Below, one piece after another: positions 1 through 17,668 of a stretch of DNA of 64,000 nucleotides. Origin of the DNA: Pocillopora damicornis (Eukaryota); the NCBI RefSeq assembly GCF_003704095.1, contig NW_020847478.1, positions 434,001 through 498,000 of the forward strand, given 5' to 3'. The translations under genes and the position numbers were made by a program. The notes beneath the pieces are model-generated. The model saw nothing but the letters and a program-made list of their open reading frames with translations, was not told the origin of the DNA and ran no database searches. Numbering within the stretch: the first letter of the stretch is position 1; each line of letters starts with the position of its first letter.

Positions 1-3000
1 ACCAATCTACACCAGGGTCCTCTGTTATCCCAACGCATCGGCTGCATTAAGAAATACAATAATATCAGTATTTCAATGTCCCCTCACTGGAAAGTGTAAT
101 GTGTTCGAGCCGGTACCGAGACGAGAGAAGTCTCGAAATGGACCCCTGAGTTGGTGTTCTGTAAGTGCTTTGAAGCGTTAACGGGTAAGGAGTGAAAACG
201 AGCGACGAATTGAGAAGGAAGTAAAAACGAAAATATTTTTTTCCTACTTGCGGCTTGGTGGCTCGTCGCTCTAAAGCGCACACAAAACCGCCAGCTACGT
301 AGGCAAGACTGCAGACAATGACTAGCTTTTCAATAACTTGAGTGGAAATCATCATCAGAGTCGAGTTCGTGAGCGCCGCTTGGGCATCTTTATCATGATT
401 TTACAACCTGTTGGGCTCCAGCGGCGGTTTTGATGAGCTGTTAGGATTAGGATCACCTTTTTCAAGGTCACTTAAATCAAGTTTGTTTGAATCTCATTTT
501 TTGCCCTTGAATGTCCCTTCTCGAGTTTTCGAGAAATCGGAGACTACATGGAAGAATACCATTCTACTCCCCGTCATCTGACAAACCACCAACAAACTCT
601 TCCCTTCGTTAATTTGTAACTCACCCATGAAACCATTCGTCACATCCATCACAGCCAATCATGAAAGTTCCATCGTCAGGCTCAGCACACACGGGACAAT
701 AGTACTCTTTAGCGTATCCCTAAAACACGAACACCAAGAATACCACTGTGTTATCGTTATTACTCAGAGCCGGGTTGTTCGAAAGGGATTTAACGTTAAT
801 CTTGGTTTAAAAGTTCACCTTGGCTTAAATTGCTCATGTAGAAGAACGTGTGCGAGAGCTACGGTTTTGTTGGGTTTCATCTCAATATGACTCGAAACTA
901 ACGGGCAGAAAATGCAAACGAAATATCCCTTTGCAGGGCTATAAAACTTAATTAAAAATTCACACTGACCCTGGGTTAGTTAAACCGTGTTTTGAAAAAC
1001 CAGTTTACTTACATGAACAAACGTGGTTGATAGTGTCTGTGACACGACTGTTCGTTCCAGTGGTTCACTTTTGATCGTTAACTTGGGTGCAGGTGAGGCG
1101 GTGACAACTGAGGCAGTGGTTGTAACAGTTTCCTGTTTGCTTGAGGCCTTTGAAGACCCCGCACTGTCAACGGCTTGACTGCTTACAGTAGAAGAGAAGA
1201 GTTTTTCTGAACTACCTTTTCCATAATCCCTGTTAAAAAAAAAAAAACCAAAGCAAAACAAAACAAAAAAACAACATTTAATATAAAGATGGTCACCAAT
1301 CCCTGTTTAAAAAAAACAAAACCAAAACAAAACAAACAAAAAAAGAAAACAACATTTAATATAAAGATGGCCACCAATGTCGCAAGCAACTACCCCGCTA
1401 CAATCAGAAAATGCAGGGGTATTACGCAGGAGTGATAGAATGTCAAGTAGTTTGATTGTCTGGGTAAGAGTAGTCCTGTAAAAGAAGCTATTGGTGTGTA
1501 GCGACTGACATTTCATTTGACTCTGAGATAGCTTCCACTAAGGTTGTTGAAATAACAGTCACTACTAGGTACCAACAACATTCTTCTTCAAGACCACTCT
1601 AATCCGAAAGGTCTGTCTACGCATTCCCAATTTCAACCCGATTATGTGGTCCCCTACGGCAAAAAAAACTGAACAATTTTCTACAACACCTTTTAGTGAT
1701 GATTTAAAATAGGGCTTAAACAGTGGTGTTCTTGAAGGAAAACAGGCTGTGTGGCTTTTCTTAATATAAAGTTAAGGATTGCCTACTAACTTACCGCAAG
1801 TTCTGAGTTAACAATTAGAGCACTGTCCCCCTCAACCAAGAACAGGCGCTTCACAATGAAATTTTGTATGCAATTTAATTTTACTTAACCTCATCCTTTA
1901 AGAATACTCTATTATACTGAAGCACAAGGCTACATACCATGGTAAAGGTTCTGTCTTACTAGCTCCTGTAGTTGTTAATGACGCGGAATTGGACGGAGTG
2001 TCTAGTTTCACAGTGATACGAGGGATGGGTGTGGGGAATGGCGATTCTGGAAAAGGTTCTGCATGATCTGTCTTCAGCTGAAACATAAAAATATGTGTGG
2101 GTGGAGATGAAAATGTATTTCGTTATGCCCTTGCTGTGTTTCAGTGCTTTGTGTAAGTGACATTATCCTCCTCCCTCTGATTCATCAACAGGTCATATCA
2201 AGCGAATCTACTGCTACTGCTCGTTAATCGATAAATTCGCAAAGCGTGTGTAACATGATAGTTTTTTTCAAAATGTAAAATTTCCGTAGTCGACTTATCG
2301 CTTTTTCAAACCCAAAAGTTCTTTGTGTTAGATAACCATGAAACAAAAAGGAAACTTATGGCACTGAATAACAGACTTAAAAGTCGCGCATGTCTTTCGT
2401 CCGTGCGCGCGTAAAAATCATATGTGCGCGCATAAAAATCATAAATGCGCGTCTGACTACAGTATTTACCCGGTACCCTGCGTCTGAGCATATGAAATCC
2501 GTCTGCACAGTTAGCATATATCTGAGGGTAATGCAATATATTGTTGGTACTTGACCCTTAACTCCCAAGATTCAAGTAGCAATTCTCCCCTCTGACCACT
2601 ACTCATTTCCTTGTAAATTACGGGTGAAAGTTTGGTACATGTATAATATCACAATCACATCATCCGGCTGATAAGCCTGTCCGTTCTCATAACCTTTTTG
2701 CAAGATAAAATATTGGAATCACAAGGAGAAGTTTCATATTGATCACATCTAGGAGTTACAGGGTTTAAAGGAACTAAAATTCAAAAGTAACTTCTTTCTA
2801 GAGAACAGTAGATTTAATTGATTTAAGAACGCACTAACCTTTTTACTCTTATCTTTTTTCTTTTCTTTTTCCCTATCCTTTTCTTTCCTCTTTTTCTTTT
2901 TCTTCTTGTGTTCCAGTGCTGGGTCTATTAAAACATTTCCTGGCAAATTTCTTTCTGCGGGTGCAACCGCAAAGTCTGCCATGGAAAATTTGAGTCCCTC

Positions 3001-5902
3001 ATGGGTAGAAGGAGTACTCCAATCTTTGGGTTCCTTTTTAATTGAGGGCTCTATAACTTTGTCTTTTCCTTTTTTGGCTTTTGTCTTTTTAGCAGGACCT
3101 GCCTTTGGTTTTGAATTCTTATTTTCTGATTTCTCTTTTACCACTGTGTCATTGGAAGGCAGGAATTCAGACACAGCAAACTGATGCCCTGCATCAGTCT
3201 CCTTCTTGATGGGTTTTATAATTAATTTTGGCATGCTTTCTTTCACTTCTATGTTTTCTTTGGCTGTTTCAGAGGCTGGCTGTGTCAAGGATTTCTTGGT
3301 AACAGGATTCTTGGTCTTGGTTGCTGGTTTTTTCTCTTTCTTTGCATTTGTTTTAGTTTTCTTTGAAGAGCTCCCTGTTATTGACTCAGTTTCCACTGGA
3401 GTCACACTTGTTGGTTTTGGCATGGGTGATTTCATTGGAGATGGTGACTTTTTCTTTGCTGGTTTCAGTTTTGGAGGTGTTTTTGGCGTAGCAGGTTTCT
3501 TTGCAGGGCTAGCTATGTTTTTAGCAGGCTTAGGCTTCTTTTTTGGGCTTGATTTCACCTTTGTACCTGGCTCCTTTCCTGCTTCTTTGCTCCCAACAGC
3601 TGTCTTTTTCTCCCCTTGTTTGGGTTTTGCAGTTGCCTTGGAAGTGGTGACTTTTTCTACAGACTGAGTAGCAGCTACAGGAGGAATACTTGATGTTGGT
3701 GGGATCTCAAATGTTTTTGCTGAACTCCAAATGTCAGGTGATGGAGTTGGTGATGGGGAGGATAGGTTTCCTTGCAGTGCTTCAAGAATGTCCATTTCAT
3801 TTCCCCTGTTTCCTTTCTGAATGAAAGGTAGATCAACACGTCTCTTTTTTGTGTCATTTTCAAGCGCTGGGGGCATATCAAGAGATCTCTTGACAGCTAC
3901 ATGTTCAATAGAAGTTTCTTCAGCAACTGTCTTGATTTCCTTCCTCACGTATCCTTCTCCACTTGTTGGTTCTTCTCCAGCATCAACTGTGTCTGCATCT
4001 TCTGCTGTTGTTGCTTTATCTTCATCTGAAGGAAAAAAAGAAAACGGATATTGCAACCATTTGCTGACACGGGGACATATATTTAAAATAAAACAAAATA
4101 ATGATAAGAAATGTCAATCTAAGAATATCTCAGCACACTGTCAGACACATGAAATGTTAATTGTCCTACATAATGCAGCACAGAATCTTCTCTAAGATTG
4201 AAACTCGACACAGAGAATAAGTTGGAAAGAAAAAAGAAAAAAGAGATTGCACTGGTACAGTGCAATTGGCCAAAAATACTCTCAATGCAGTGCCATGTAA
4301 ATTGTATGTGAGTTAGATCCTAAAGGCCTTGATTCTGGTTCTAACAATGCATTTTTAATTGATGATTGTAATCTATTGAGTGGCAATCTAATATATTCCT
4401 CTATCAAAAGTCATATATCTTGACTGATGGAGTAACAAAAACGCAAATGGAGATGTAGCCCAGTCTTGGTATATCAAAACTCAGCTTTAAAGAGAGGGAC
4501 ATTGGGGTCTGTTAGAAACTGCAAAACAACAGAAAAAATCATCCAAAACCACAAAACTGGCAGAAGAATTAGATCAAAACTAAAAACCCCATGCAAAACT
4601 GATAAATTTTCACATCTCTGTTTTAAAATCCTAATCTATCCAATACAGTCACTGACAAGTGGAGTATATAGAGGTTTCACGGCTATTCAAGATCAGTGGA
4701 GGTGTATAATTGCTGCTCAGATTGACAAGAAACTGGAACCCAAATAGGAAAAACTGAAAACCACATCAGATACCAAATCCAAAAACCCATTAGTGATATT
4801 TACAAAAACCAACAACCAAAGGCTGAAAAAAACAGAAAATCCATAAACCACAATGAATACCGAAACCAAAACACTCAAATTATTTGGCACAAAAACCAAA
4901 CCCAATCTAAAAAATATCCAAAACCTCAAAACAAAAAAACTCAATGCCCCTCTTTAAATGATAGACATCACCTCAGAGCACAGGGGACCAATTAATTCCT
5001 ACAAAGTCTGAAGTTTTCCACTCAGCACCTTGCTCTTACAGTAAGTTCTATTGTTCAGGCTGAATTTCAAATCAGTGAGACTGGTGGGCTTTATCAGAGT
5101 TAAAGAAATGAATGTGTTAAACAAAAAAGCCTTTGGCACTACAAGGGAAAGAAGACTGCAGCAACAGTCATACAAAACCTTCATTTTGAAGAAGCTTAGA
5201 GACCAAGGGAGGCAAGTAGTCATAGTACTGCTCCAGTCTCTCTGCAATCTCTCCATTACGTGGATGATGGAGCACATTAGGTTTTGGCTTGGGATACTGT
5301 GGCAACTGATGAATAAATGGAACTTGGTCTACCTGGGTTACAAAGTCTTCTAGTTCGCCGAGGTAAACGCCAATATCTCGAAAGGCAAGGTCTAGGTCAT
5401 CTAAGTTTGGCTCAGTTCTTGAGTCTATGAAATTTTAAACAAAAAATTATTCATCTCTCTTCCAATTACTCTAAATAACACCAATTCATTTTTGTTTTAG
5501 GATTGTAAATTAATGAAACCACTCAGCTTGTCTAGATATATTTTTTCTCGGTAGCTTATTTTTCTGCAATTAAGTAACAGCACAAAATAAACTAACGTGA
5601 AAAAATAATAAAAATTCTGTACTAGCTGTTCGTTTGTAAACGTTAATTTCTACGTGTACACATTGCATCAATCAGCATCCTATAAATTGTATGCACTTTG
5701 TTATGAAATATAACTGAACACTTCGTCCAAACTCACATATCTGGGAGTATCCATGCGCTGACTTCGCGATCTCCTCAAGATATTTCTGTAACACGTCGGT
5801 CAACAAGTCGTGGCTCGACTTTTGTAAGGCATCCCAACCCATGGACTGGCAGATCTGAGCCACCGCTATCTGAAGAGCACCGTGGTTAAATCCGTCACAC
5901 AT
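1..5902 (-). CDS. TAF3: TFIID subunit 3 (histone-fold/BTP N-terminus, Lys/Pro-rich linker, C-terminal PHD finger); spliced, 3' end runs off the window
   Basis: Exons 5902-5737 (MCDGFNHGALQIAVAQICQSMGWD..), 5424-5179 (YSRTEPNLDDLDLAFRDIG..), 4025-2839, 2077-1938, 1229-1013, 719-625 (YYCPVCAEPDDGTFMIGCDGCDEWFHG) and 41-<1 (RCVGITEDPGVDW), joined by GT-AG introns in consistent phase. BTP domain plus PHD finger is the TAF3 architecture. Confidence 0.93.
4493..4953. mobile_element. Probable MITE with A/C-rich internal subrepeats
   Basis: Imperfect TIRs AGAGGGACATTGGG and CTCAATGCCCCTCT, with internal AAACC-type repeats. Confidence 0.5.
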
Positions 5903-6203: not shown

Positions 6204-9200
6204 ATGGATGAATTAGAAGTGCCATATTACGTCGATGGCGACCTAGATGAGTACTATGATGATCCTGATGAAGCCTTGTTGTACGAACATTTGGAAAAAA
6301 TGTCCAAGTATGGGCGATTTTTCTACATGTTCCAGTCTTGTGTGGGACCGACGACTGTTCAGACATTTGACTTGGTCGGTCCTCTCTTGGTAATGTGCTT
6401 TATTCTACGGGTTGTCTCGGCACTTAAACTTCCAAGACTTGTAGTTCATTTCGTTTCATTTATCTGTGGACTAGGAGCTTTATTTTTGTTCCTGAAAAAA
6501 AACTTGGTATATCCACTGGCCATGAGCGCGCTTGGGTATCTAATTCTGTTCGTGAAGCACGGAAATAGAGGGATGGTAATGGCTTCGACTTCAGTCATGT
6601 TTTTAATCATATGGTGCGTCTTGTTGTTTATAATCTCTTTCATTTAGTTCTTTGACCCTGCTGAAAAGGAATTTGCTGTAGATGACAGAGGCACATCCAG
6701 AAATTATGGAAGGGGGGAGCCAAACTTTTATTTAGAAAATATAATTTTGTATTGGTATTATTATCTTTTTTCCACTTGAGCCTAAATGAGGTTGGAGTAT
6801 TTAAAGGAAATTTTTAACATGCCTAGTTTAGTAATGATATGCCATCCTCTGCTATAAGAATTTTGGTCCCTGTCAAATAATTAAAAAATCACTTATGTCT
6901 GATGAGTGGGGTGGGGTGGGAGGTTGGGGCTGAATCCCCCACGCCCTTCCACCTGGCTCCCCAATTGGATAAGAGCCAAAAGCATCTGAATAGTGCATAG
7001 GAGATCGTAGCCTGTTTAGGTTCTTTGTTAATGAGTTTAATAAAAGGCAGATGAGTTGAGAGAAAATTGCTGGGAACCTGAGAGAGAGTTCTCCTTGTCT
7101 TTGTATTGTATTTTGCAATACATATACTTACAATACAATATGGACATTGCTTACAAGAAAAAAAGGGGTAAAAAGTATACTAATACATGGCTTTTAATTT
7201 TAACCTACTGTAGGCTGTTTTCTCCTTGTTGCCTCAATGCATCTATTTTGCTTGCATACCCCTGCTGACATAGAAGCCTGGCCATGTTAGTTGAAAAGCA
7301 TTTTTCCATTTTTCCTAGGTACACACAGTGAACCTTTTTCCCTGCATTCTCTGTTGCCTCTTTAGTGCGTGAAGCAATAAAGAGTCTGGCTAATTATGTA
7401 CAACTTAGTTCTTTGTTTTAATTATTCACAGTGAACTGTTTATTGTTACACCTGAAAACTGGCACCAGGTTCGAGGTATTTGCTAAAAAATCATTTTGTT
7501 CATATCAGAAATACTTAGTCCTTGTTATTCTATGATATGACCTCTCAATCAAAACATTGATCATACTAGTTGGTAGAAAGAAATTCTTACAGCAGAACCT
7601 GACAAAGAATGTTTTGATTTAAGTATAATACTTTTTATTTTTATATTGTCCCTAATTAATTGTTAAAGTATTTCTTTGTTTTAAATAGAACATGCTGAGA
7701 CAATTAAGTCTGTTATTTTTGTTAATGTTTCATAAATTGTGTATATCACATGAGATGATTGGAAAGAAATAACTTAATGATTATTGGAATCTGATTTTTC
7801 AGGCTCTCAGATGGTACTAGTAATGAAGCTTATTTCATTGGGTTTTGATATGGATAAAGGTACAACTCCACGGCCTAACATCGTGGAGTATCTTGGGTAC
7901 TCTGTGTCAGTCAGTTCTGTCATCTTTGGACCTTTTCTGACATATTCAGATTATTGCCAGCTTTTGGATGGAAAAAAGTTGGTAAGATAAAGGATAAATT
8001 TTTAGCCTTACTTTGCACATATAATCTTTGTGCCTACAAGTGGTGAATAGCATTGCCAGGAATGGCTATCAGTTGTAATTGGTATCAGCATTCTCATTAT
8101 CATATCCTAATCGTCACTGTGGTTAGGGTTATTAGTATTATATCTGTTGCTTGTCACTGTCATCCACATCATCATTATTAGTTTTTACACAATCATCATC
8201 GTTGCTGGCATCATTCTTACTCCAGTTTTGTTTGTACACTCTCTTTGTGCTGAGTTAAAATTAATGTCTGTGAATATATGAAAATCATGTATACATGAAC
8301 TGGGGTTTAAGAAAGGAATTTGAAAGCAATCTTCACAGTAATGAACACTACTTAAGCAGTAGTGTAAATATTAGGCCTGAAAAAAATTCAGGCCTGGTCT
8401 GGATATGAACCCATGACTTCTGGGATACCAGTGCAGTGCTCTACTAAACAAGCCAACTGGGAGCTGGTCATTATGTTGGTTCGTAGTAAACTGGTGAAGT
8501 GATGAATCAATGTCTATGAATATTTGAAAATCTTTTGTGTGAACTGCAGTTTAAGAAAAGAATTTGAAAGCAATCTTAGCAGTAACAAATGCTACTTAAG
8601 CAGGGGTGAAAATAAGACCTGAATAAGATCCTGGCCTGTCTATGATTTGAACCGATGACCTGCAATATCAGCACAGATATGTTCACTTAATGATAAAATC
8701 TAATTAACCCTTTAACTCCCAAGATTTTATTAATAATTCTCCTTACTGTCTGCCATACAATTCAATTAATGTTAGTTTAGAGAATTTGGAATTGGATCAA
8801 CCAATAATCCCCTAATTGATATTTTTCTTTATTCTTATTACTTGTCTGTTTGATATTGTACTGATAGTGTAAGGAGAAATTCTGTCTTGGTCACTAGTGG
8901 GACTTAAAGGGTTAAACTAAGTAAAATGTATCACTATTTCTCTCTCCTCTTTTTCAGAGCTTTGCCTGGTTTTTAGGAGTAGTAAGGAGTTGTTTTCTGT
9001 CCTATTGTTGTTTAATAGTTTCAGCTTGTGTTGCACCATGGATGTTTCCAGAGGACTCTTTTAAGTAAGTGAGATTTCAAATAATAATTGATAGAAATAA
9101 TTCGCTAGTAAATTAATGGCTTGTGTATTTGACATTTGGGTGGATAATCTTATGGTGTTGAGAGATCAAAAGAAATTTAATGATTTTTTTCCACTTATTT

Positions 9201-12115
9201 TTATCAACATCATTCCGTAAATAGAATAAGGGAGATGGTAAGTGTTAGAGCCCAGTAAAGAAACAGAGAAAGATGTTTTTTTGTCAGTCTTGTAACGAGC
9301 ATGGGACTAAGAAAAAAAATACTGAGTTCCCATGAGGAATCAAACCTCAGACCTTCAGATTCTGTGCTCCCATGTTAAGTATCACTGAACCACAGAGACT
9401 CTACAGTGAGCAAGGTCTATGAGGAAGTTCATATGACATGCATACTGCCAGGATCAGCAATGTCTATAGCATCATGTTTGTAAATAGTGATTAAAAATTA
9501 CATTAACCCTTTAACTCCCAAGAGTGACCAGGACAGAATTTCTCCTTACAATACCAATACAATATCAACCAGACAAGTGATGAGNNNNNNNNNNNNNNNN
9601 NNNNNNNNNNNNNNNNNNNNNNNNNNNNNNNNNNNNNNNNNNNNNNNNNNNNNNNNNNNNNNNNNNNNNNNNNNNNNNNNNNNNTCCATACTGTTCTCTA
9701 TGTATTTCCTAAGGTGCTGACAAGGAGAATTTGTTTAATAATCAAGAGCTTCAGTCTTTAGTTGGTGATCATTTTCTTTAGTCTTGTAAACATAATGTGT
9801 GATTCAGGGGTGATATTGTAAGGAGAAATTAGATGCTGGTCACTGTAGGGATTGAAGGGTTAACTGTTAGCATGCTGAACTCCAGGCTATGTGTAATTTA
9901 GTATTATCAACTGAGTTGGTATTGTAAATAAGCCACCATAAAGAGTTTCAAAGCTGACCTTTTGGGCATAAGCCCTTCATCATTCGCTCTGATGAAGGGC
10001 TATATGACAAAGGGCCAACGCTCAAAATATCAGCTTTGAAACTCTTTATGGTGGCCAATTTACGATAACAACTCAGTTGATAAATAAATACTAAATTACC
10101 TTGTTATAATCTCCCACTGATGCAGCATTACAGTTTCTTTAGAAATTAAACTTAGCCCCTTCATTCAGGCCAAGCAGCCTATATAGTTTCCTGGCTTGTG
10201 CATGTATGTGTCAAGCACAGGTCAACTGTAATTGAAAATGACGTGTGCATGTTTTCTTTTTCCAATCACCAGATGTGTTTAAGAAAGCTATACCTCTTGG
10301 AAGATTTTTTGCTGTTTTTTCAACATTTGCATTGAGTTCATTACTTCATGTAAGTATATCTTGGAATGCTTGAGTTTATAATGGTGTTGAAAATCTGACA
10401 GATGATGAAGCTTGGTGCAATATCAGATGACTTCTAAAGGTATTGAAAATCTCTCTGGATAATGAACTGATCCAGTTTCAAATAATGAATCATAAGTTTG
10501 CTTGACTCCTCTGTAAACTTTAAAACAACTCTTTTTCATGCATTACACTCATTATTTATGTTATCTTGAAGGGTATCAATTTTCAACTTGCAGCAGTGTT
10601 GATTTCTGTAGGAACATATGCTTACATTGAACATGGTAGGTGAACACCCAACATCATTGTTTTTGGATCTTAGGAAAAAGCTTGAATCTGTAACCATTTC
10701 ATGTTGTATTTAGCATAAGAACACATTTTTGTGGGGCATTGTACAAAAATGGATATTTTTCTTCTAGAATTCTACATCTTACTAACACTTAATCTTCTCA
10801 GTGGTATTTACTGAGCAAGATTTTATTAATGATAGAAGTAGTTGTCTAGGGTGACTGCATGTGCAGGAGCACCTCTTGAACTCTTTGTTTTTTGGAAACC
10901 AAAATACTATTTTGAAGGAAATTTTTTCACTCACAGCAATTTATGTATCCAAGTTGATCATAATTTCTTGTCTTAACAGTTTTTCGTCACAAGTTGGGGA
11001 AAATTTTCAATGCTTGTATTCTAGCAAGAAAATGCAGACCAGAGTGTGGACATGTTTACAAAGATGTGAGTAGTCTACTTAAATATCTTTTAATCCTTCA
11101 TTAGGATTCTGGAGCCTGTTTTTTTGACAGGCAGTTAGTGATAATTCAGGATAAAAAGTTTACCTTGTTCTCGATTTCTATTGATTGCAATATAGGGTAT
11201 ATTTTGGCTTATGTTTTTAGGAGACGTTTTACAATTTCATCTTACAAAACTGGAGGAAAAAAATATGTGAAATAATTCAACTGTCTGTGAAGCTATGCAA
11301 CTAAAAAACAAAATTGCAGAATAACCCAGTCTGTAACCTTATTCCTTTAAATATCAGAGGTGATTAACTAGTAAATTCTCTCTGCAATATCCATACATTA
11401 TCCAACAAAACAGCAATGAGAATACTCAAACTAATCAGATAAAAGTATTTATCTTGATCTAACACCAAATTCATGTCACTAATTTACAAAGAGATGTGTA
11501 GCAGCTTGAGGGGAGAATTTACAATCAGATCTTCAGGGAGTTAAAGGGTTAATCTTCCTTTGATTAACTTGGCCCTTGGCGATTTGTTACACTGCATTCT
11601 TTTCGATCTTTAAGGTACATGTTGTGTAAAATGAAACAGCTGTTTGATCAGCACTGTTTGCGAATTTTAAAAAGTTTTTTTTATGCTCCATCTTCTTTTC
11701 TATATTCTATCTTCTTTCAGGGTAACTTTTGGGTGATTGCTGCTAATCTTGGCCTAAGCTTCCTTGCGGTCTTTCACCTGGCTTATTTAGGCATCATGTT
11801 TGGGGGAGACTCAGAAATCCAAGAAAAGGTCATTGTGAACAAAAACGATTTTATCACAGTAAAAATCTTCCTTGCTAGGTTCATTATCTGTTTTCCTGTG
11901 AAACTCTGAGCACTGGTGCTCTCTGTTTTGTGAGTTTCACAATGAAAATTGACTTTAATTGTGTAGAATTTTGATGAATGCATTCGTAATTTTGTGGTTT
12001 TAATTTGTTTCAGGGTTATGGCATGAATCACACTTTAGGCAAATGGTCCGATTTGGATTTTGCCAGTCATTGGGTGGCCCTGGCAACTTTTCTTTTGAGT
12101 AGAATTATTGGCTGA
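6204..12115 (+). CDS. PORCN: Porcupine, Wnt O-palmitoleoyltransferase (MBOAT family); central exon(s) missing in the gap at 9585-9683
   Basis: Exons 6204-6613, 7432-7475 (ELFIVTPENWHQVRG), 7803-7981 (SQMVLVMKLISLGFD..VIFGP), 8958-9064, [gap], 10273-10349 (..FALSSLLH), 10572-10635 (GINFQLAAVLISVG), 10980-11064, 11721-11828 and 12014-12115 (HTLGKWSDLDFASHW). LLHG carries the MBOAT catalytic His. Confidence 0.93.
8263..8680 (-). repeat. tRNA-derived (SINE-like) repeat, two tandem ~245-bp units
   Basis: Unit AATGTCT.TGAATAT.TGAAAATC..TTTAAGAAAG..TTTGAAAGCAATCTT occurs twice. GAACCCATGAC..CAGTGCTCTAC is the reverse complement of tRNA A/B-box-like sequence. Confidence 0.55.
8708..8911. mobile_element. 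piggyBac-type MITE (~200 bp, TTAA target site); dispersed family
   Basis: TTAA|CCCTTTAACTCCCA...TGGGACTTAAAGGG|TTAA. Related, variably decayed copies near 2555-2765, 9503-9863, 11335-11553, 20560-20764, 21854-22058, 25510-25704, 28372-28582, 30182-30392 and 55228-55400. Confidence 0.8.
9230..9490 (-). repeat. Decayed tRNA-derived SINE-like repeat
   Basis: GAGGAATCAAACC..CACTGAACCAC is the reverse complement of B/A-box-like motifs; intronic. Confidence 0.4.
9893..10099. repeat. Palindromic repeat, probably a Penelope-type terminal relic
   Basis: Long imperfect inverted repeat (GTAATTTAGTATTATCAACTGAGTTG.. / ..CAACTCAGTTGATAA..TACTAAATTAC) centred on CTGATGAAGGGCT; a half copy lies at 37735-37825. 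Confidence 0.6.
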
Positions 12116-13852
12116 GCAAGTTTAAGCAAATGCAAAATACACAAGTCAACTATGGTGAATATTTTATAGGGGGCCACTGTTTCCATTGCCTCTATAGACT
12201 GAGCAAAGTGACGTAGCCTTAATTTGCAAATGGTGCTTGCAAAGATCACCTGAGAAGACTGGACTGGGAATCTACCAACTTTCTCCAATACTTTATTCCA
12301 ACCAAATATTGGTGTAAAATAACACTGTAGTAGTTAACTGTCAAAAAAGGACTTGGCAAAATTATACAAATGCTAATATTAATAAAAATGAAACCTTATG
12401 ACATTCAGTTCTCAGCCGAAAAAAGAAAGAAAGCTTTCAATTCTGTAAGGCGTTATTCCTGAGTCATAAGATTTTCCCTTGTATTTTAGTAAAGAAAACG
12501 TTTCTGACAATAAACAATGGCAGCTGAGTAAGAGTGTTTTTCCTTCTTCTCATACCCAGTCTCTTGGTATCTGCTAGCTATGATTGACTTACTGAATAAA
12601 GGGGGATGAGGATTCCCATGCTAATTTGAAGTAACTTCATATCTAAGGAATTTGGAACAAGACTGACCTATAAAATCACAAGTGACAACAAATGCAATGC
12701 ATAGGCAGCTCAAGTCAAGCACAGCATGTGAACTTTTTCAAATGGGTTACTCAAAACCAAAAATTTTTCTCAACACATAAGATCATGATCTATAGATTTT
12801 GTTTTGTGAATAACCTTAAACTTGACAAAGCCTTGTGCAACAAAAGACGGCAATTTTTACAGCTTTATTTGTTGCAGCATTGGGCCTTGTAGTTGACTTT
12901 CACAACTAATTATTGTGTCTCAATTTTTACAAATTAAAGTTAAAGCCACTTACAGACTGTATTGTGACTAAGAGGTTATCAATTAAAGATACAGAACCAT
13001 AATTATACAGTTTTGCACTTTTTTGGTTATTATGCAGTACAGGGCTTAAGTACATAATTTACAGTGTGTGCCTAAAGTGTTAATCTAACAATAATTGTAT
13101 CAAAATGAAGGCCATATTGTTTCAAAACCTTCACAACAGAAATTAAAAAGGTGACATGAAACTTCCTTTCCCCTTAAAACCTGGACCCAGCTGTGTGAAC
13201 ACTTACTTAAAAACGCAGGGTTTTTATCCTAGAAAATGAGAAGTGTTCCTTTTTCTTTTTTTACCTTGTTTTTTTCCTAATTTTAGCGTCAAAAGCATGC
13301 ATTTTAACAAGTACCATCATTTAGTTGTCTTGCACAAAATTTTACCAGCTCTATTTGCTTGCAAGAAATACATGCATATATACAACGATGTAGAAAGGCT
13401 TCTAAAGTTAGGTCAACATTCTACAAGCCATTGATATATCTTTAGTTGTCTACATGGCCAAAAAATTTAATTTTTATACTTACAACCTATACCTATCTAG
13501 TAAACTATGGTTTGTAGGGTTAGAAAGATATCTGTTGCTAGGCAGATTATATTTCCACTATAATTTTTAAGGAGCTTGGGTTTTTTAATGCAAGATAGTC
13601 AACTAATTGTTATGTGCATTAAGCTGTGAGTAAAATATGACTATTTTATAAGGTGTCCATTTGCCACCAGTAAATATATCAGATATTTACATGGCATCAT
13701 GTATCAGTAATGTACATTGGATATTTTGTTACATTTTACCACAAAAAGTGTCAAGTTTCTTTTTCTACTCAATTAGATCTGTAATGTTAGTTGAATTTTC
13801 ATGAAAATTCAACCATGATCATGAGTAGGACTGCAATGTCTTCAGAAGTTTG

Positions 13853-15436
13853 TTAGTTGAGGTCGACATGCACAAACAGCAGATGTATGGCTGTTGTAAG
13901 GAAAGGCATCAACAGTGTCAACAGAACAGCCTTGACACCTGTCAAATCAATGCCTAGGATCCGAATACCTCTTCCATTTTCCAAGTATCCTTTCACCTTA
14001 TTCAGGATTTCATCATCATCAAACAGGTAATCCCCCTCTCGCTGCTCACTGTACTTGAGATCTTGGACAACCTCAGGTAGACTGGTCATTATCTTGTGCA
14101 GCTTGGCCAGGAAAACTATTGGGAGGCTGTATAATACCAGCATTTCCAGGAAATCTGCCAATGCACCACAGATGATTTTGGTGATCATCCATCCGTCTGT
14201 CTTTGAAACAGTGTGCTTCTTAAAGGCCTGGGATTGTGTGGTATTTTTATTAACTTTGGAATCTGCTAGCCTCAGGTATATAGCCAGTTGCTGTGGCTGG
14301 GAGTAGTTTTGCTTGCCAATATCAACAATACTGTTTGGATCTCGTGGAGTTTCCCTTGCTCTTGCTAGTTCTGCTTGGTCAGTGTAGGTCTGTTTGTAGT
14401 AGCTTTCCGTTTGAATACGTTCCGCAAATGAAAAAATTGACGGAATGAGGAGAATCAGCAACAACAGTAGATGTATCAATAAGAATGGTTGGAAAGCCCT
14501 CTCTGCTCTGCGGATCGTAATTTTGATGTCGATAAACCGATTTCTTATTTTTTCTTTACCTTCGCGCCACTTTTGTACCTGCTCCTTGAAGAAACGAACT
14601 CGACTAAAGATAATGTATACCTCGAAAATGAACACTATGAATATCGGCAGAGCCACAAGTCGCGCCAGAACCGAAAGTAGAAGAGAGAGAACGATTTCTT
14701 TCAGATCGAACGATTCCACTTTCTCAGTGGTTATGTTCATCTGAGTGACTCTGGAAAAAACTGGCACAACGAAAACACCAATCAACACAGCTGCGCCTGT
14801 CTTGAAGATCGTACGTCGAACTTTCTTCCAGTATCGCCTGGTTAGAATCACCTCAGACAGCATTCTTTCAAGGTGGCGCTTTCTAAAGTAATATAACCCA
14901 AGAATGTATATCTCGAGGTACCTGAGAGACCAGACGATGTTTTTAGCGGCTGTCACTGTTTCTTTTAATTCTTCCTCAATCAACGATCTGTTGTGAAATG
15001 CGCCCATATCGTAGGCATAACAGATACAAAAGAAAATTACTATCAAACACTGCATCATAGACCAAAACGCCTTGCGTTTGATTGACGCGTTTTGAGGGTA
15101 CCACTGGAATGTGATGAACTCAAGGTAGAACCGCAGCCACTTCAGACGGGAAGAACTCAAGCTTAGATTTATGAAAGCGTCGTCTCTGGTCACAGGCTTG
15201 CTATCGTCGATCCAGGCTGTTTCTATATCACTGTCACTGTCTCCATAAGCTGTTTCTTCTTCACATTGTTGCGACACGCTAGAGGTCATAGACGAAGTGC
15301 GATCTCTGACACCTTGGAAGTCACTGTCGATCTTCCCTGTCGCGTGTGCTGTTTCTTCGTAGTTGTTCTCTGTTTGTATAGTAATAGATCCTCTGTCGTC
15401 ACCAAAATGATAAACGGGTCTATGTCCAGAGGCCAT
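13853..15436 (-). CDS. Intronless 527-aa multi-pass membrane protein with 7TM ion-channel (Grl/DUF3537-like) topology
   Basis: Single long ORF with seven hydrophobic segments, a long basic helical loop after TM4, and a C-terminal YLENGRGIRILGIDLT + hydrophobic helix resembling the TM7a/b region of Gr-like/DUF3537 proteins. No class A GPCR motifs. Confidence 0.7.
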   Translation of the reverse strand: MASGHRPVYHFGDDRGSITIQTENNYEETAHATGKIDSDFQGVRDRTSSMTSSVSQQCEEETAYGDSDSDIETAWIDDSKPVTRDDAFINLSLSSSRLKWLRFYLEFITFQWYPQNASIKRKAFWSMMQCLIVIFFCICYAYDMGAFHNRSLIEEELKETVTAAKNIVWSLRYLEIYILGLYYFRKRHLERMLSEVILTRRYWKKVRRTIFKTGAAVLIGVFVVPVFSRVTQMNITTEKVESFDLKEIVLSLLLSVLARLVALPIFIVFIFEVYIIFSRVRFFKEQVQKWREGKEKIRNRFIDIKITIRRAERAFQPFLLIHLLLLLILLIPSIFSFAERIQTESYYKQTYTDQAELARARETPRDPNSIVDIGKQNYSQPQQLAIYLRLADSKVNKNTTQSQAFKKHTVSKTDGWMITKIICGALADFLEMLVLYSLPIVFLAKLHKIMTSLPEVVQDLKYSEQREGDYLFDDDEILNKVKGYLENGRGIRILGIDLTGVKAVLLTLLMPFLTTAIHLLFVHVDLN

Positions 15437-16101
15437 GATTCAACGAACAAGGACTGAACAATCTGCTATAGTCAAGCTATAGTTTACGTCAATATAGGTT
15501 ACTCTTAGGCGTGATTTAGGGGATTCCCCTCTATCGCTTTCCATTTGATTCTGGCGCTTTGCCACTTCAAGAAAACAAGAAAAGCGCCCTTTTCAATTGC
15601 ATAACAAAGCACACTAAGTAAGAAATGCTTAAATCATGAATGTATCATAGATTTCTCTGGTATATCATGCGATAATAAAGCTTTTGTAAGTTGTAGGCCG
15701 TCAAATACAATGCGTGTTTGGAATACAGTCCTACTGCTATTTTCTTCTAGATGTGTCTCGACTTATCTCTGGACTTTGAAGTGTAAATTTTTAAAATAGT
15801 CGGTTTTAGTTTCCGTTGAAACCCGAAAGGAAATATATCACCTGCTTCAAAGAGTAGCAGTCATTAATGCACAAAAGTCTGTTGTATCGTAAATAAAGTT
15901 TTCCACGAAAAACGCTCGCGCATCATTTACTTTTTTGAGAGGTACGCAATACTATCTACGCATACTCCCATTTCCGGGAAAGCAAAAGCAAAGCGGTTCG
16001 GAAATAGTGGTTCGCAGCATTCACTCGCTTTGAATTTAGCGAGTTATCCTCGTTTGAAAATTGTACAGACAAACCGAAAGCTGCCTTTGTCTTTCTTCAA
16101 A
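15437..16101. promoter_or_regulatory. Divergent promoter with NF-kB, STAT (GAS) and IRF/ISRE-like motifs
   Basis: GGGGATTCCCC at 15519-15529; TTCCACGAA at 15901-15909; TTCCGGGAA at 15972-15980; TTCCGTTGAA at 15811-15820; TTTTAGTTTC at 15804-15813; AAACCGAAAG at 16071-16080. Confidence 0.6.
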
Positions 16102-16545
16102 ATGCCATGGTCAGCAACTCAACAAAAAAGGCTTGGATTCGAGAAAAATATTCTCGAGAAGTACTTCGGTAACAGAGTTTCATGGATCAATCCAACTAGC
16201 GATACGAAGGTTGAAGTAAGGGTAACAACCACCAATGATAAACAGTATACTCTCAGAGTGTACATTCCAAGAGATTTTCCGAATTCATGCCCGGATATGA
16301 TTGTCAGTAACCCTTCGTCCTGTCTGAGAATGAGAGACGGTTCTGTGATGAGCGCTTTGAGTGGGCTAAACCATACAATGGGCGGCAGAGATGGCTGTAC
16401 TCAGATCTGCCATTTTAAGCCGAACTTGTGGAAAGATGACAACACTCTGTACCAAGTGGTTATGAAAGGGCTGATATGGCTGGAGGGATACGAAGCACAT
16501 CTTCGCACTGGGCAACCTTTGAGTAATTACTTGCAAGAGATGTAA
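16102..16545 (+). CDS. Intronless 147-aa atypical ubiquitin-conjugating (E2/UBC-fold) protein, prokaryotic-E2-like
   Basis: ATG at 16102 in aaaATG context. Helix 1 QQKRLGFEKNIL, YTLRVYIPRDFPNSCP (UBC 'YP..PP' region), NHT in place of HPN, ICH with a Cys at the catalytic position, then W..DNTLYQVVMKGLIWLEGYE. Confidence 0.72.
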   Translation: MPWSATQQKRLGFEKNILEKYFGNRVSWINPTSDTKVEVRVTTTNDKQYTLRVYIPRDFPNSCPDMIVSNPSSCLRMRDGSVMSALSGLNHTMGGRDGCTQICHFKPNLWKDDNTLYQVVMKGLIWLEGYEAHLRTGQPLSNYLQEM

Positions 16546-17668
16546 ACAAATCGGCTGAGGACAGGAAAATAATTGTGGATCGAGACAAACACTTCTGTGA
16601 CAATAACATAAGTTCGTACATTTCTACTTGAGCCTGAACCTTGATCCTTCCGTTTGGGTAAATTTTTTTTATTGTTTAGATTTAGCGCTGGATGAAGTTT
16701 ATTTTTTCAAATCCCGGCTCTTATAGGATATCTGACCAAATAATTCACATGGCTAAACCTTCACTTCCGCGCTTTGAAGTCCATATTGTAATTATTATTA
16801 CCATTTTTATTTGTGTCGCTTTCCTGTATTATCCGATTTCTGCAAACTCTCTTGGAGTCAGGCGAAGGATCTTATTCTCCAAAGTGCTAGCAATATTGTG
16901 GGGGACTCGATCACATCCAATGACCTCCAAAATACATTTGTGCGATCCCGAAGGCGTCTGAAGGGTTGCTTGAAAGATGTTTATTTCGATCGCTTTCGCC
17001 GGTTTCTACAATCGAATGATTTGCGATTAGAATAGGATCTTACGTATGAACCTCTTATATCTTGATCTCGTATTGATTCTTTTTCATTTCAGTTGGTACA
17101 TTTTTTCGATAAGTCGGCTCCTTACCAGGCATTCCAATACTTAGTCAAAATACAAGTGACCATTACCCTCTCTTTCTCCTCGTCTCTATAACAAATGTTC
17201 AGTTTTGAGTGTCACGCGAGGCACAGAGGAGGAAATGAAAAACCATTCCGTTTTAGTGAACAATCACTTCTCGTCAAGTCAAGAAAGGCCTTCTCCACGT
17301 TCAGAGCAAATGAAAGTTAACATCGAACCTCTTTTTCTACATGAGGCTCAAAACTGCCTTTATTTAAAAGACAAGTTCAAATGAGAGAGAAAGATCGAGC
17401 AGGGGTGAGAGGAACGACTAACCNNNNNNNNNNGGAGGCTAACTAACTAAGAAGGTCAGGCCGTTTTAAAACACAACATATTCTGCTTCTTTTTTTTCAT
17501 CTGAATTGATTAATGTTAATTGGCCTCGTAAAGGATTTCTAATGCTGAGGTTTTGAGGTTAGCCCTTCGTCATCTCAGTTTCGGTGACTAGTGATGGATT
17601 TTAACTAGCCACCCCACTTCAGTGAATATTTGTTGGTTATACTACCTCCCGACATGCAGAAGAAGTAC

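Follow-up and report, generated by a model that had tools for sequence, protein, structure and literature searches.

The stretch of DNA considered here is a 64-kb window (positions 434001-498000 of contig C4113) taken from a coral genome assembly of 234 Mb in 4393 contigs; the closest public relatives of the window are Tara Pacific coral metagenome contigs. The part that concerns us contains two uninterrupted, divergently oriented open reading frames (ORFs), one of 527 aa on the minus strand (13853-15436), which resembles gustatory-receptor-type ion channels and will be called the channel gene, and one of 147 aa from its ATG on the plus strand (16102-16545), which encodes a bacterial-type E2 enzyme. 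From ATG to ATG they are separated by a spacer of 665 bp (15437-16101). A first-pass annotation had described the two as intronless genes lying head to head among intron-rich neighbours, and had read them as a single defence cassette sharing one promoter. The ORFs, their head-to-head layout and the spacer of about 665 bp were correctly given, with the E2 ATG at most one base off, and the remark about the neighbours is consistent with the data, in that the LEM-domain and MBOAT genes nearby align to their orthologues as many short exon-sized blocks. The features needed for what follows are these:

13853-15436, minus strand: channel gene, single exon, 527 aa, seven-transmembrane ion channel (7TMIC)/gustatory-receptor-like, from the ORF, predicted structure and fold matches

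15437-15778, minus strand: ancestral 5' flank of the channel gene (promoter and 5' untranslated region, 5'UTR), 88% identical to locus L014 up to the junction at 15778

15519-15529, no strand assigned: predicted 11-bp kB element (GGGGATTCCCC on the plus strand), 83 bp upstream of the channel ATG

15779-15802, plus strand: left copy of an imperfect 24-bp direct repeat bounding the E2 unit

15779-17105, plus strand: duplicated E2 unit of 1.33 kb (323-bp 5' flank, ORF and ~560-bp 3' flank), from paralogue alignment and the gap in L014

15901-15909, no strand assigned: predicted GAS-type palindrome TTCCACGAA, at -201 from the E2 ATG

15972-15980, no strand assigned: predicted GAS-type palindrome TTCCGGGAA, at -130 from the E2 ATG

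16102-16545, plus strand: E2 gene, single exon, 147 aa, bacterial-type UBC fold, from the ORF, predicted structure and family profile

16546-17006, plus strand: probable 3'UTR of the E2 transcript; RNA-library contigs X1 and X11 end at 17003-17006 and X5 at 16807, ends that cannot fix the true 3' end of the transcript

17094-17117, plus strand: right copy of the imperfect 24-bp direct repeat bounding the E2 unit

A string check of the window placed all the motifs listed by the first-pass annotation where it had put them: the kB 11-mer at 15519-15529, TTCCACGAA at 15901, TTCCGGGAA at 15972, TTCCGTTGAA at 15811, and three strings described as resembling the interferon-stimulated response element (ISRE). 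These last are present but are loose matches, and the GAAANNGAAA core of the ISRE has 0 occurrences in the spacer 15437-16101, which deprives the proposed IRF control of its consensus. For the GAS palindrome, TTCN3GAA, the chance frequency that had been suggested (about one per 4 kb) is too low, the rate in the window being 0.52 per kb (33 occurrences). As for the more general argument, that a kB site together with a GAS cluster would be rare by chance, the 11-mer is unique in the 64 kb, and the spacer holds three TTCN3GAA, a count of at least three being reached by just 1% of 665-bp windows.

The origin of the spacer becomes clear when the E2 gene is compared with its own relatives. There are six copies of this family in the genome, three in tandem on contig C351 and one each on C2983, on C687 and in the window, and window positions 15776-17105 align over their full length with the C351 units (L007, L008) and with their Tara counterparts (L002-L005), at 78-82% identity; the E2 unit therefore carries its own 5' and 3' flanks. 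In L014, a contig whose flanks are 91-94% identical to the window, the unit is absent: the position equivalent to 15778 is joined straight to that equivalent to 17102, and this empty site has a single copy of the 24-bp repeat. Both GAS palindromes lie inside the unit (two TTCN3GAA in the 323-bp E2 flank, P 0.0125), and they arrived with it; copies of the unit at paralogous loci carry them as well. Because the unit is absent from L014 and from four other genera, and because it brings its own promoter, the spacer is two promoters abutted at 15778/15779 and not a shared ancestral promoter. A transposon was considered as the nature of the 1.33-kb unit and rejected, there being just six copies; no terminal inverted repeats turned up, although none were searched for. 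The unit behaves as a segmental or tandem duplicate.

The pairing of the two genes is correspondingly restricted, being present only in the window genome and in a 98.6%-identical contig (L016). Four other genera (Oculina, Orbicella, Porites and the genus of L015) show no E2 gene for 10 kb around the channel gene, and the two genes are not paired in L014, L015, Oculina, Orbicella, Porites or any of 14 metagenome loci. The LEM-domain gene adjoins the channel gene in Oculina and Porites, and the MBOAT gene flanks it on the other side in Oculina and L015. As a separate observation, the place that the E2 unit occupies in the window is taken in L015 by two single-exon SOCS-box genes (2104-3249 and 8277-9290), which lie immediately upstream of the channel gene.

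All this bears directly on the idea of an innate-immune cassette in which channel and E2 are co-induced from a single bidirectional NF-kB/STAT/IRF promoter and the channel serves the E2 pathway as its effector. Such a cassette would fit the head-to-head arrangement 665 bp apart with kB and GAS elements in between, as well as the presence of both genes in polyA RNA libraries, and in the window lineage the two promoters could in principle cross-talk; however, the adjacency is limited to one shallow lineage, being absent or lost in the 91-94%-identical relative and in four genera, the spacer is a composite with its junction at 15778/15779, the kB site is conserved independently of E2 (see below), and the E2 unit occurs with the same GAS sites at paralogous loci where there is no channel gene. 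The partner genes of the E2 (E1, JAB and a small protein) are on another contig, and there is no ISRE consensus. Synteny and the make-up of the spacer accordingly contradict the shared-promoter cassette, which we consider very improbable. A comparison of spacer and pairing across corals, which the first-pass annotation had proposed and which was carried out here, gives a divided answer, the kB motif being conserved and the gene pairing not retained. It is instructive to set the locus beside vertebrate immune promoters with kB and GAS elements, such as the bidirectional promoter of TAP1/LMP2 (PMC2191963): in both, a p50-type kB site lies near one start and a GAS near the other, within a short divergent spacer, but the coral spacer differs in that its halves are of separate origin, the pairing is not conserved and there is no ISRE.

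Some indication of how the two genes became neighbours comes again from L014, where a 120-bp piece of the E2 ORF (codons 3-42; L014 6149-6268) lies 12 bp past the channel stop codon, between 5-bp microhomologies. This fragment is 95% identical to the window copy, compared with 89-92% to the other paralogues, and looks like templated filler DNA. The synonymous divergence (dS) between the window E2 and its nearest paralogues is ~0.3, far above the 6-9% divergence of the flanks from L014. The likeliest sequence of events, as judged from such comparisons, would be an insertion in the ancestor of a shallow lineage, followed by loss in L014.

The kB element, by contrast with the GAS sites, is older than the arrival of E2 and belongs to the channel gene. 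It fits GGGRNNYYCC near the channel start (exact 11-mer at -83), and the exact 11-mer is found at -83 to about -170 of the channel ATG in the window, in L016 and in L014. It is present also in L015 (from another coral genus, with 66% protein identity) and in Oculina patagonica (L001), upstream of each tandem copy of the gene in Orbicella faveolata (L020), and in Porites lutea (L021, 52% protein identity). A further 16 channel orthologues come from metagenomes, and in 10 of these the upstream sequence extends for 400 bp or more; the exact 11-mer stands at -145 to -159 in eight of the 10, and the other two have GGGAAATCCC at -85 and -122. In sum, the site is kept in every channel orthologue with enough upstream sequence, some 16 contigs from robust and complex corals, and apart from the kB block the channel promoters of different genera are barely alignable. 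The chance of meeting the 11-mer in 300 bp at its genomic density (124 in the 234-Mb genome, as against 27 for a reversed control) is ~1.6e-4 per lineage.

Because it is conserved in this way across stony corals, the kB site is very probably functional, in line with the first-pass annotation, and NF-kB very probably acts directly on the channel gene throughout Scleractinia, with binding presumed from the motif. The 11-mer is the classic p50-homodimer site. A gene with a Rel-homology domain (NF-kB) was detected in this genome, and the DNA binding of cnidarian NF-kB, as measured on binding arrays, resembles that of human p50 (PMC5700166).

What such control might serve can be envisaged in more than one way, since the kB site could drive developmental or cell-type expression of the channel (for instance in cnidocytes or sensory cells, in which cnidarian NF-kB is active) and not a response to pathogens, the channel then being a chemosensor or patterning factor. 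The sole functionally studied cnidarian GR-like (gustatory-receptor-like) gene reportedly acts in body patterning, and the fold of the channel protein is that of chemoreceptor channels. NF-kB in Nematostella controls cnidocyte formation (PMC5700166), which would agree with a developmental role, whereas the tandem expansion of the gene in Orbicella, with up to four kB-like sites per copy, is more typical of inducible genes. We regard the developmental alternative as a genuine possibility, although one at less than even odds. The array in question (Orbicella faveolata MZGG01000199.1, L020, 9100-29300) consists of four to five channel copies ~5.3 kb apart, and its units have, besides the 11-mer, three kB-like sites: ~890 bp upstream, just past the stop codon and ~300 bp beyond that.

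Two other occurrences of the 11-mer in this genome may be mentioned in passing. On contig C1441 (166000-175999; L047 984-1427, 3657-4238 and 8498-9355) there are three tandem intronless bZIP_Maf genes, with the 11-mer ~170-200 bp upstream of two of them and within the listed ORF of the third; on this sequence evidence they are a candidate for a second NF-kB-driven family in the genome. On contig C2088 (3000-12999, L046) a ~7-kb tandem repeat has the 11-mer once per unit, with five sites on the 27.5-kb contig, and contains 145-aa ORFs without a Pfam match.

Turning to the channel protein itself, residues 1-81 are disordered and the helical core is confidently predicted: the AlphaFold (AF2) model, built on 31 homologues, has a mean predicted local distance difference test score (pLDDT) of 62, with values of 70-90 in the transmembrane core. 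When this model was compared with known structures using VIA-align, eight insect OR/Orco/GR chains were matched at Z 18.8-24.6 (310-342 residues), the aligned span in the model being residues ~90-525 and the next unrelated fold reaching Z 7.3, and with Foldseek the top 23 matches were all OR/GR chains, at probability 1.00. On the strength of its predicted structure, the 527-aa protein is a seven-transmembrane ion-channel-fold (GR-like) protein, and the description of it as 7TM-channel-like was apt. A Pfam search of the protein gave only chance-level matches at E <= 1, with no 7tm family model among them. Corals have 77 homologues, one of which carries the UniRef name 'Gustatory receptor', and in this genome there are one copy and one distant paralogue.

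The natural context for this protein is the 7TMIC superfamily, comprising insect OR/GR and animal GR-like proteins (Benton et al. eLife 2020, PMC7746228; Benton & Himmel eLife 2023, PMC9998090). The seven-helix core (residues ~90-525) superposes on Orco, ORs, Gr43a, Gr64a and BmGr9 at Z 22-24.6 (325-342 residues, root-mean-square deviation 3.9-4.5 Å), and the length and the intracellular disordered N-terminus are typical of GR-like proteins; the differences are that sequence identity is 8-11%, that there is no Pfam 7tm match, and that the coral protein is a predicted channel. As regards its transcript, one RNA library contains a single high-depth contig that runs from ~1.2 kb left of 12800 to 14676, so spanning the 3' half of the channel ORF (the 5' half is thinly covered), and this suggests either a long 3'UTR or an overlap with the convergent MBOAT transcript.

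The fold of the E2 protein is predicted with much greater confidence (pLDDT 92.9). Nearly all the Foldseek matches of the model are E2 enzymes, and VIA-align gives Z 8-10.6 for a chain of the Citrobacter Bub complex, the Tsg101 UEV domain, the Serratia CdnG-E2 complex, UFC1 and many E2s. Members of the family match the RWD (31 of 40), UQ_con (21 of 40) and UEV models weakly, in every case below the Pfam cut-offs, and the Prok-E2_E model weakly as well, and a profile made from 40 coral E2 sequences matches 491 clusters at 50% identity, bacteria included. Among the relatives are a protein of Exaiptasia and one of Cryosericum (Caldisericota) that is annotated as a ubiquitin-protein ligase; the coral profile matches the Cryosericum cluster P0304/P0342 with E 4.6e-23. 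Bacterial relatives are 30-43% identical (43% for P0222), three of them (P0342, P0200 and P0235) match PADLOC E2 models at 3e-7 to 1e-5, and Pfam PF26395 (E2-CBASS) is connected with the family through a search of a protein atlas. No solved structure of a close relative came up when the PDB was searched by sequence, the matches being artefactual ones to designed Kelch repeats and weak ones to RWD/FANCL/UBE2T, and Pfam searches of longer family members (P0201, P0205 and others) found no informative fusion domain. With a UBC fold, bacterial profile matches and relatives in E1/JAB operons (described below), the label of bacterial-style E2 that the gene had been given is justified. Compared with canonical E2, UEV and RWD domains (PF00179, PF05743, PF05773) the coral protein has the same fold, but TM-scores are only ~0.5, there is no HPN motif and there is a single C-terminal helix.

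Cys103, which lies in an I-C-H motif, is invariant in the family, whether its members come from corals, anemones or bacteria, as are His91 and Trp110, and the window copy keeps every invariant residue. His91 is 12 residues before Cys103 and Trp110 is 7 after it, mirroring the canonical H..C..W spacing, and Cys103 is the predicted catalytic residue. The family lacks the HPN motif, the corresponding residues being H-T-x in corals and H-T/L-L in bacteria; prokaryotic E2 classes without a classical HPN motif have been described (PMC1779556). The ratio of nonsynonymous to synonymous divergence (dN/dS) between the window E2 and its paralogues is 0.27-0.35, a value that marks purifying selection on the window copy. 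PolyA/cDNA library contigs from four studies cover both the channel and the E2, with E2 coverage ending at 16807-17006, inside the E2 unit. Bacterial contamination was considered as a source of the E2 family and rejected: the six copies are spread over four contigs, one copy having intron-bearing LEM and MBOAT genes on its two sides, orthologues are found on chromosome-scale Oculina scaffolds and in Exaiptasia, GC content is 0.34-0.44, and the intergenic spacing is of the order of kilobases.

The bacterial relatives also suggest what the E2 may work with. Gene context in bacteria was taken from three operon examples, and at loci L017-L019 and L023 the E2 relatives occur in the arrangement JAB - E2 - 63/66-aa protein - ThiF-type E1, an arrangement of the kind that Iyer, Burroughs & Aravind 2006 (PMC1779556) catalogued as operon classes 6a-6e. 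One of the three examples, L025/L026 (from JGI metagenome contigs), is rather different, having the E2 beside a phage-integrase-like gene and a JAB-like gene ~6 kb off, with no tight JAB/E1 operon, and it hints that the E2 family travels on mobile elements. When the bacterial E1 and JAB proteins were used to search this coral genome, they led to a cluster on contig C687:

C687:94400-107582 (L027 6410-9943; L028 1106-9581), running off the contig end: coral E2/JAB/E1 cluster

Within 12 kb, this cluster has an E2 paralogue 55% identical to the window copy and three Prok-JAB genes, together with a ThiF-type E1 of 429 aa that is 51% identical to the E1 of Cryosericum (Caldisericota). It also contains an 80-aa ORF that shares LVFDPxTG and GFF motifs with the small protein of the bacterial operons, and a 170-aa ORF with two LVFDPxTG repeats, and its GC content and gene spacing are coral-like. 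The window copy of E2 itself has no E1 or JAB neighbour. Orthologues of the E1 are found in scleractinians, an anemone, an octocoral and a sponge, the next in line being cyanobacteria at 42-49% identity, and a 'thif family protein' has been listed as a bacterial transfer into Anthozoa (PMC4878875). Neither the genes called at L017-L019 and L023 nor the scanned ORFs of C687 include a CD-NTase domain, and membership of CBASS was rejected, no CD-NTase neighbour having been seen either at the bacterial relatives or at the coral cluster.

Comparison with the known bacterial E1/E2/JAB operons (classes 6a-6e, PMC1779556; Bil; type II CBASS with Cap2/Cap3; PF26395, PF14462) shows points of likeness at several levels. 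The minimal UBC fold with one C-terminal helix is common to both; the family has an invariant Cys with a His next to it in most members, a feature on record for class 6d (PMC1779556); the Serratia CdnG-E2 and Citrobacter Bub complexes are structural neighbours of the coral E2, at Z ~10; and the coral genome has homologues of the four operon proteins together in one cluster. The coral system differs in having separate monocistronic genes with eukaryotic spacing and six E2 copies. The small partner protein (63-80 aa, with LVFDPxTG and GFF motifs) has no ubiquitin-like Pfam match and no Gly-Gly end, and whereas Bub systems use Ser oxyesters (10.1101/2024.11.21.623953), the coral and bacterial E2 family keeps Cys.

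It is across this wider system that the GAS elements are best judged. Over twelve promoters of the system TTCN3GAA was observed 31 times against 3.7 expected (from first-order Markov simulations, in which the maximum was 11 in 2000), and when the spacer length was varied as a control over the same promoters the counts were 4 for N2, 6 for N4 and 2 for N5. Five of the six E2 paralogues in the coral's own genome have at least two TTCN3GAA within 340 bp of the start, two of them having promoters that cannot be aligned to that of the window, and TTCYNNGAA lies at -115 to -155 in five of the six, including the unalignable promoters of L009 and L011. At the TTCCACGAA site the TTC and GAA half-sites are kept in nine units of ~80% identity, with the middle varying (ACG, GTG, ATG). 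The spaces between the genes of the C687 cluster are likewise rich in GAS elements: the one from which E2 and JAB diverge has six, the one preceding the E1 has four and the one preceding the third JAB has five, and the GAS-dense stretches (L027 8270-9200; L028 3600-4110 and 7450-7977) compare with an expectation of ~0.3 per 500 bp. The strong enrichment of these predicted GAS elements is a genuine mark of E2-family promoters, and the pattern supports STAT-type control of the whole E2/JAB/E1 system. Of what had been claimed about GAS and STAT, then, the presence and enrichment of the motifs stands; their assignment to a promoter shared with the channel does not, the sites belonging to the E2 unit.

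Two doubts may be raised together here, namely that the window E2 is a redundant or decaying duplicate, and that the palindromes are bound by other factors, such as zinc-finger kB-binding proteins or BCL6-like or ETS-type proteins. The genome has, after all, six paralogues, and the unit was lost from L014 without obvious consequence; yet the ORF is intact with all its family-invariant residues, dN/dS is ~0.3, and the gene is in the RNA libraries of four studies. Similarly, TTCCGG includes an ETS core and STAT went undetected in a domain search, but the enrichment is specific to the 3-nt GAS spacer, and the 11-mer is the textbook p50-homodimer site. An explanation along these lines seems to us unlikely.

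The account we favour, to which we would give a probability of about 0.72, is that the locus contains two functionally unrelated, independently regulated single-exon genes that were made head-to-head by a lineage-specific insertion of the 1.33-kb E2 unit, the channel gene being an NF-kB target and the E2 deriving from a bacterial-type system. On this account the channel promoter has its own p50-type kB element, kept across stony corals, and would most likely be a direct target of the single coral NF-kB. The window E2 would be a dispersed, expressed paralogue of the E2 of a bacterial-type conjugation system that survives as the C687 cluster; the bacterial-type E1 would most likely charge the E2 on Cys103, the E2 would pass the small modifier to targets, and the JAB proteins would process or remove it, with the TTCN3GAA-dense promoters found across the system, the window copy included, placing it under STAT-type control. 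The folds and homologies, the structure of the duplication and insertion, the conservation and enrichment of the motifs and the occurrence of both genes in RNA libraries come directly from the data; in this scheme the binding of transcription factors, the enzyme cascade and any immune role are things that we infer.

It must be acknowledged that a number of points weigh against this account. An exon-wise search of the genome with PF02864 and PF01017 found no STAT, though the method cannot show absence, and the promoters of young paralogues are not independent for the purposes of the GAS statistic (the signal does hold in the unalignable promoters). The window E2 scores weakly against curated models (Prok-E2_E, E 0.007; PADLOC E1-E2, E 0.025), and the predicted active-site position of Cys103 comes from motif spacing and invariance. 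The RNA contigs also span the spacer, and so give neither transcript starts nor levels, and carry-over of genomic DNA is possible. The difference at the L014 site may reflect either an insertion in the window lineage or a deletion in L014, the dS of ~0.3 and the 120-bp fragment favouring an older insertion with later loss. Finally, the kB and GAS motifs are predicted binding sites. As for precedent, the literature yielded no 7TMIC member reported to have a conserved promoter kB element, and it yielded no account of kB promoters in corals, of GR-like genes in the immunity of corals or of homologues of Cap2/E2-CBASS in cnidarians, these last three absences being no proof of novelty.

There is a general caution in this, which is that a tidy, motif-rich divergent promoter can be a recent duplication accident. 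What remains are two separate leads, for both of which an immune function is something we infer: a GR-like channel gene with a deeply conserved NF-kB element, and a bacterial-derived E1-E2-JAB system with a GAS signature common to its promoters, of which the window E2 is a dispersed paralogue. To our knowledge the targets of cnidarian NF-kB are almost unknown, and a kB site held upstream of one gene in both major clades of stony corals offers a testable target that ties NF-kB to a chemoreceptor-type channel. Bacterial ubiquitin-like conjugation systems (CBASS Cap2/Cap3, Bil and Bub) are known antiphage devices, and the immune modules so far common to bacteria and animals are cGAS-STING, viperin, gasdermin and TIR. 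It may be, and we advance this quite tentatively as somewhat doubtful on present evidence, that stony corals, and probably anthozoans, possess a horizontally acquired E1-E2-JAB-small-modifier system as a STAT-controlled innate-immune module, with its E2 expanded and dispersed, and that separately a GR-like channel has been an NF-kB target since before the split between robust and complex corals. The list of immune modules common to bacteria and animals would then be lengthened by a four-protein bacterial operon type whose homologues lie together in an animal genome, have expanded and have promoters dense in GAS elements.

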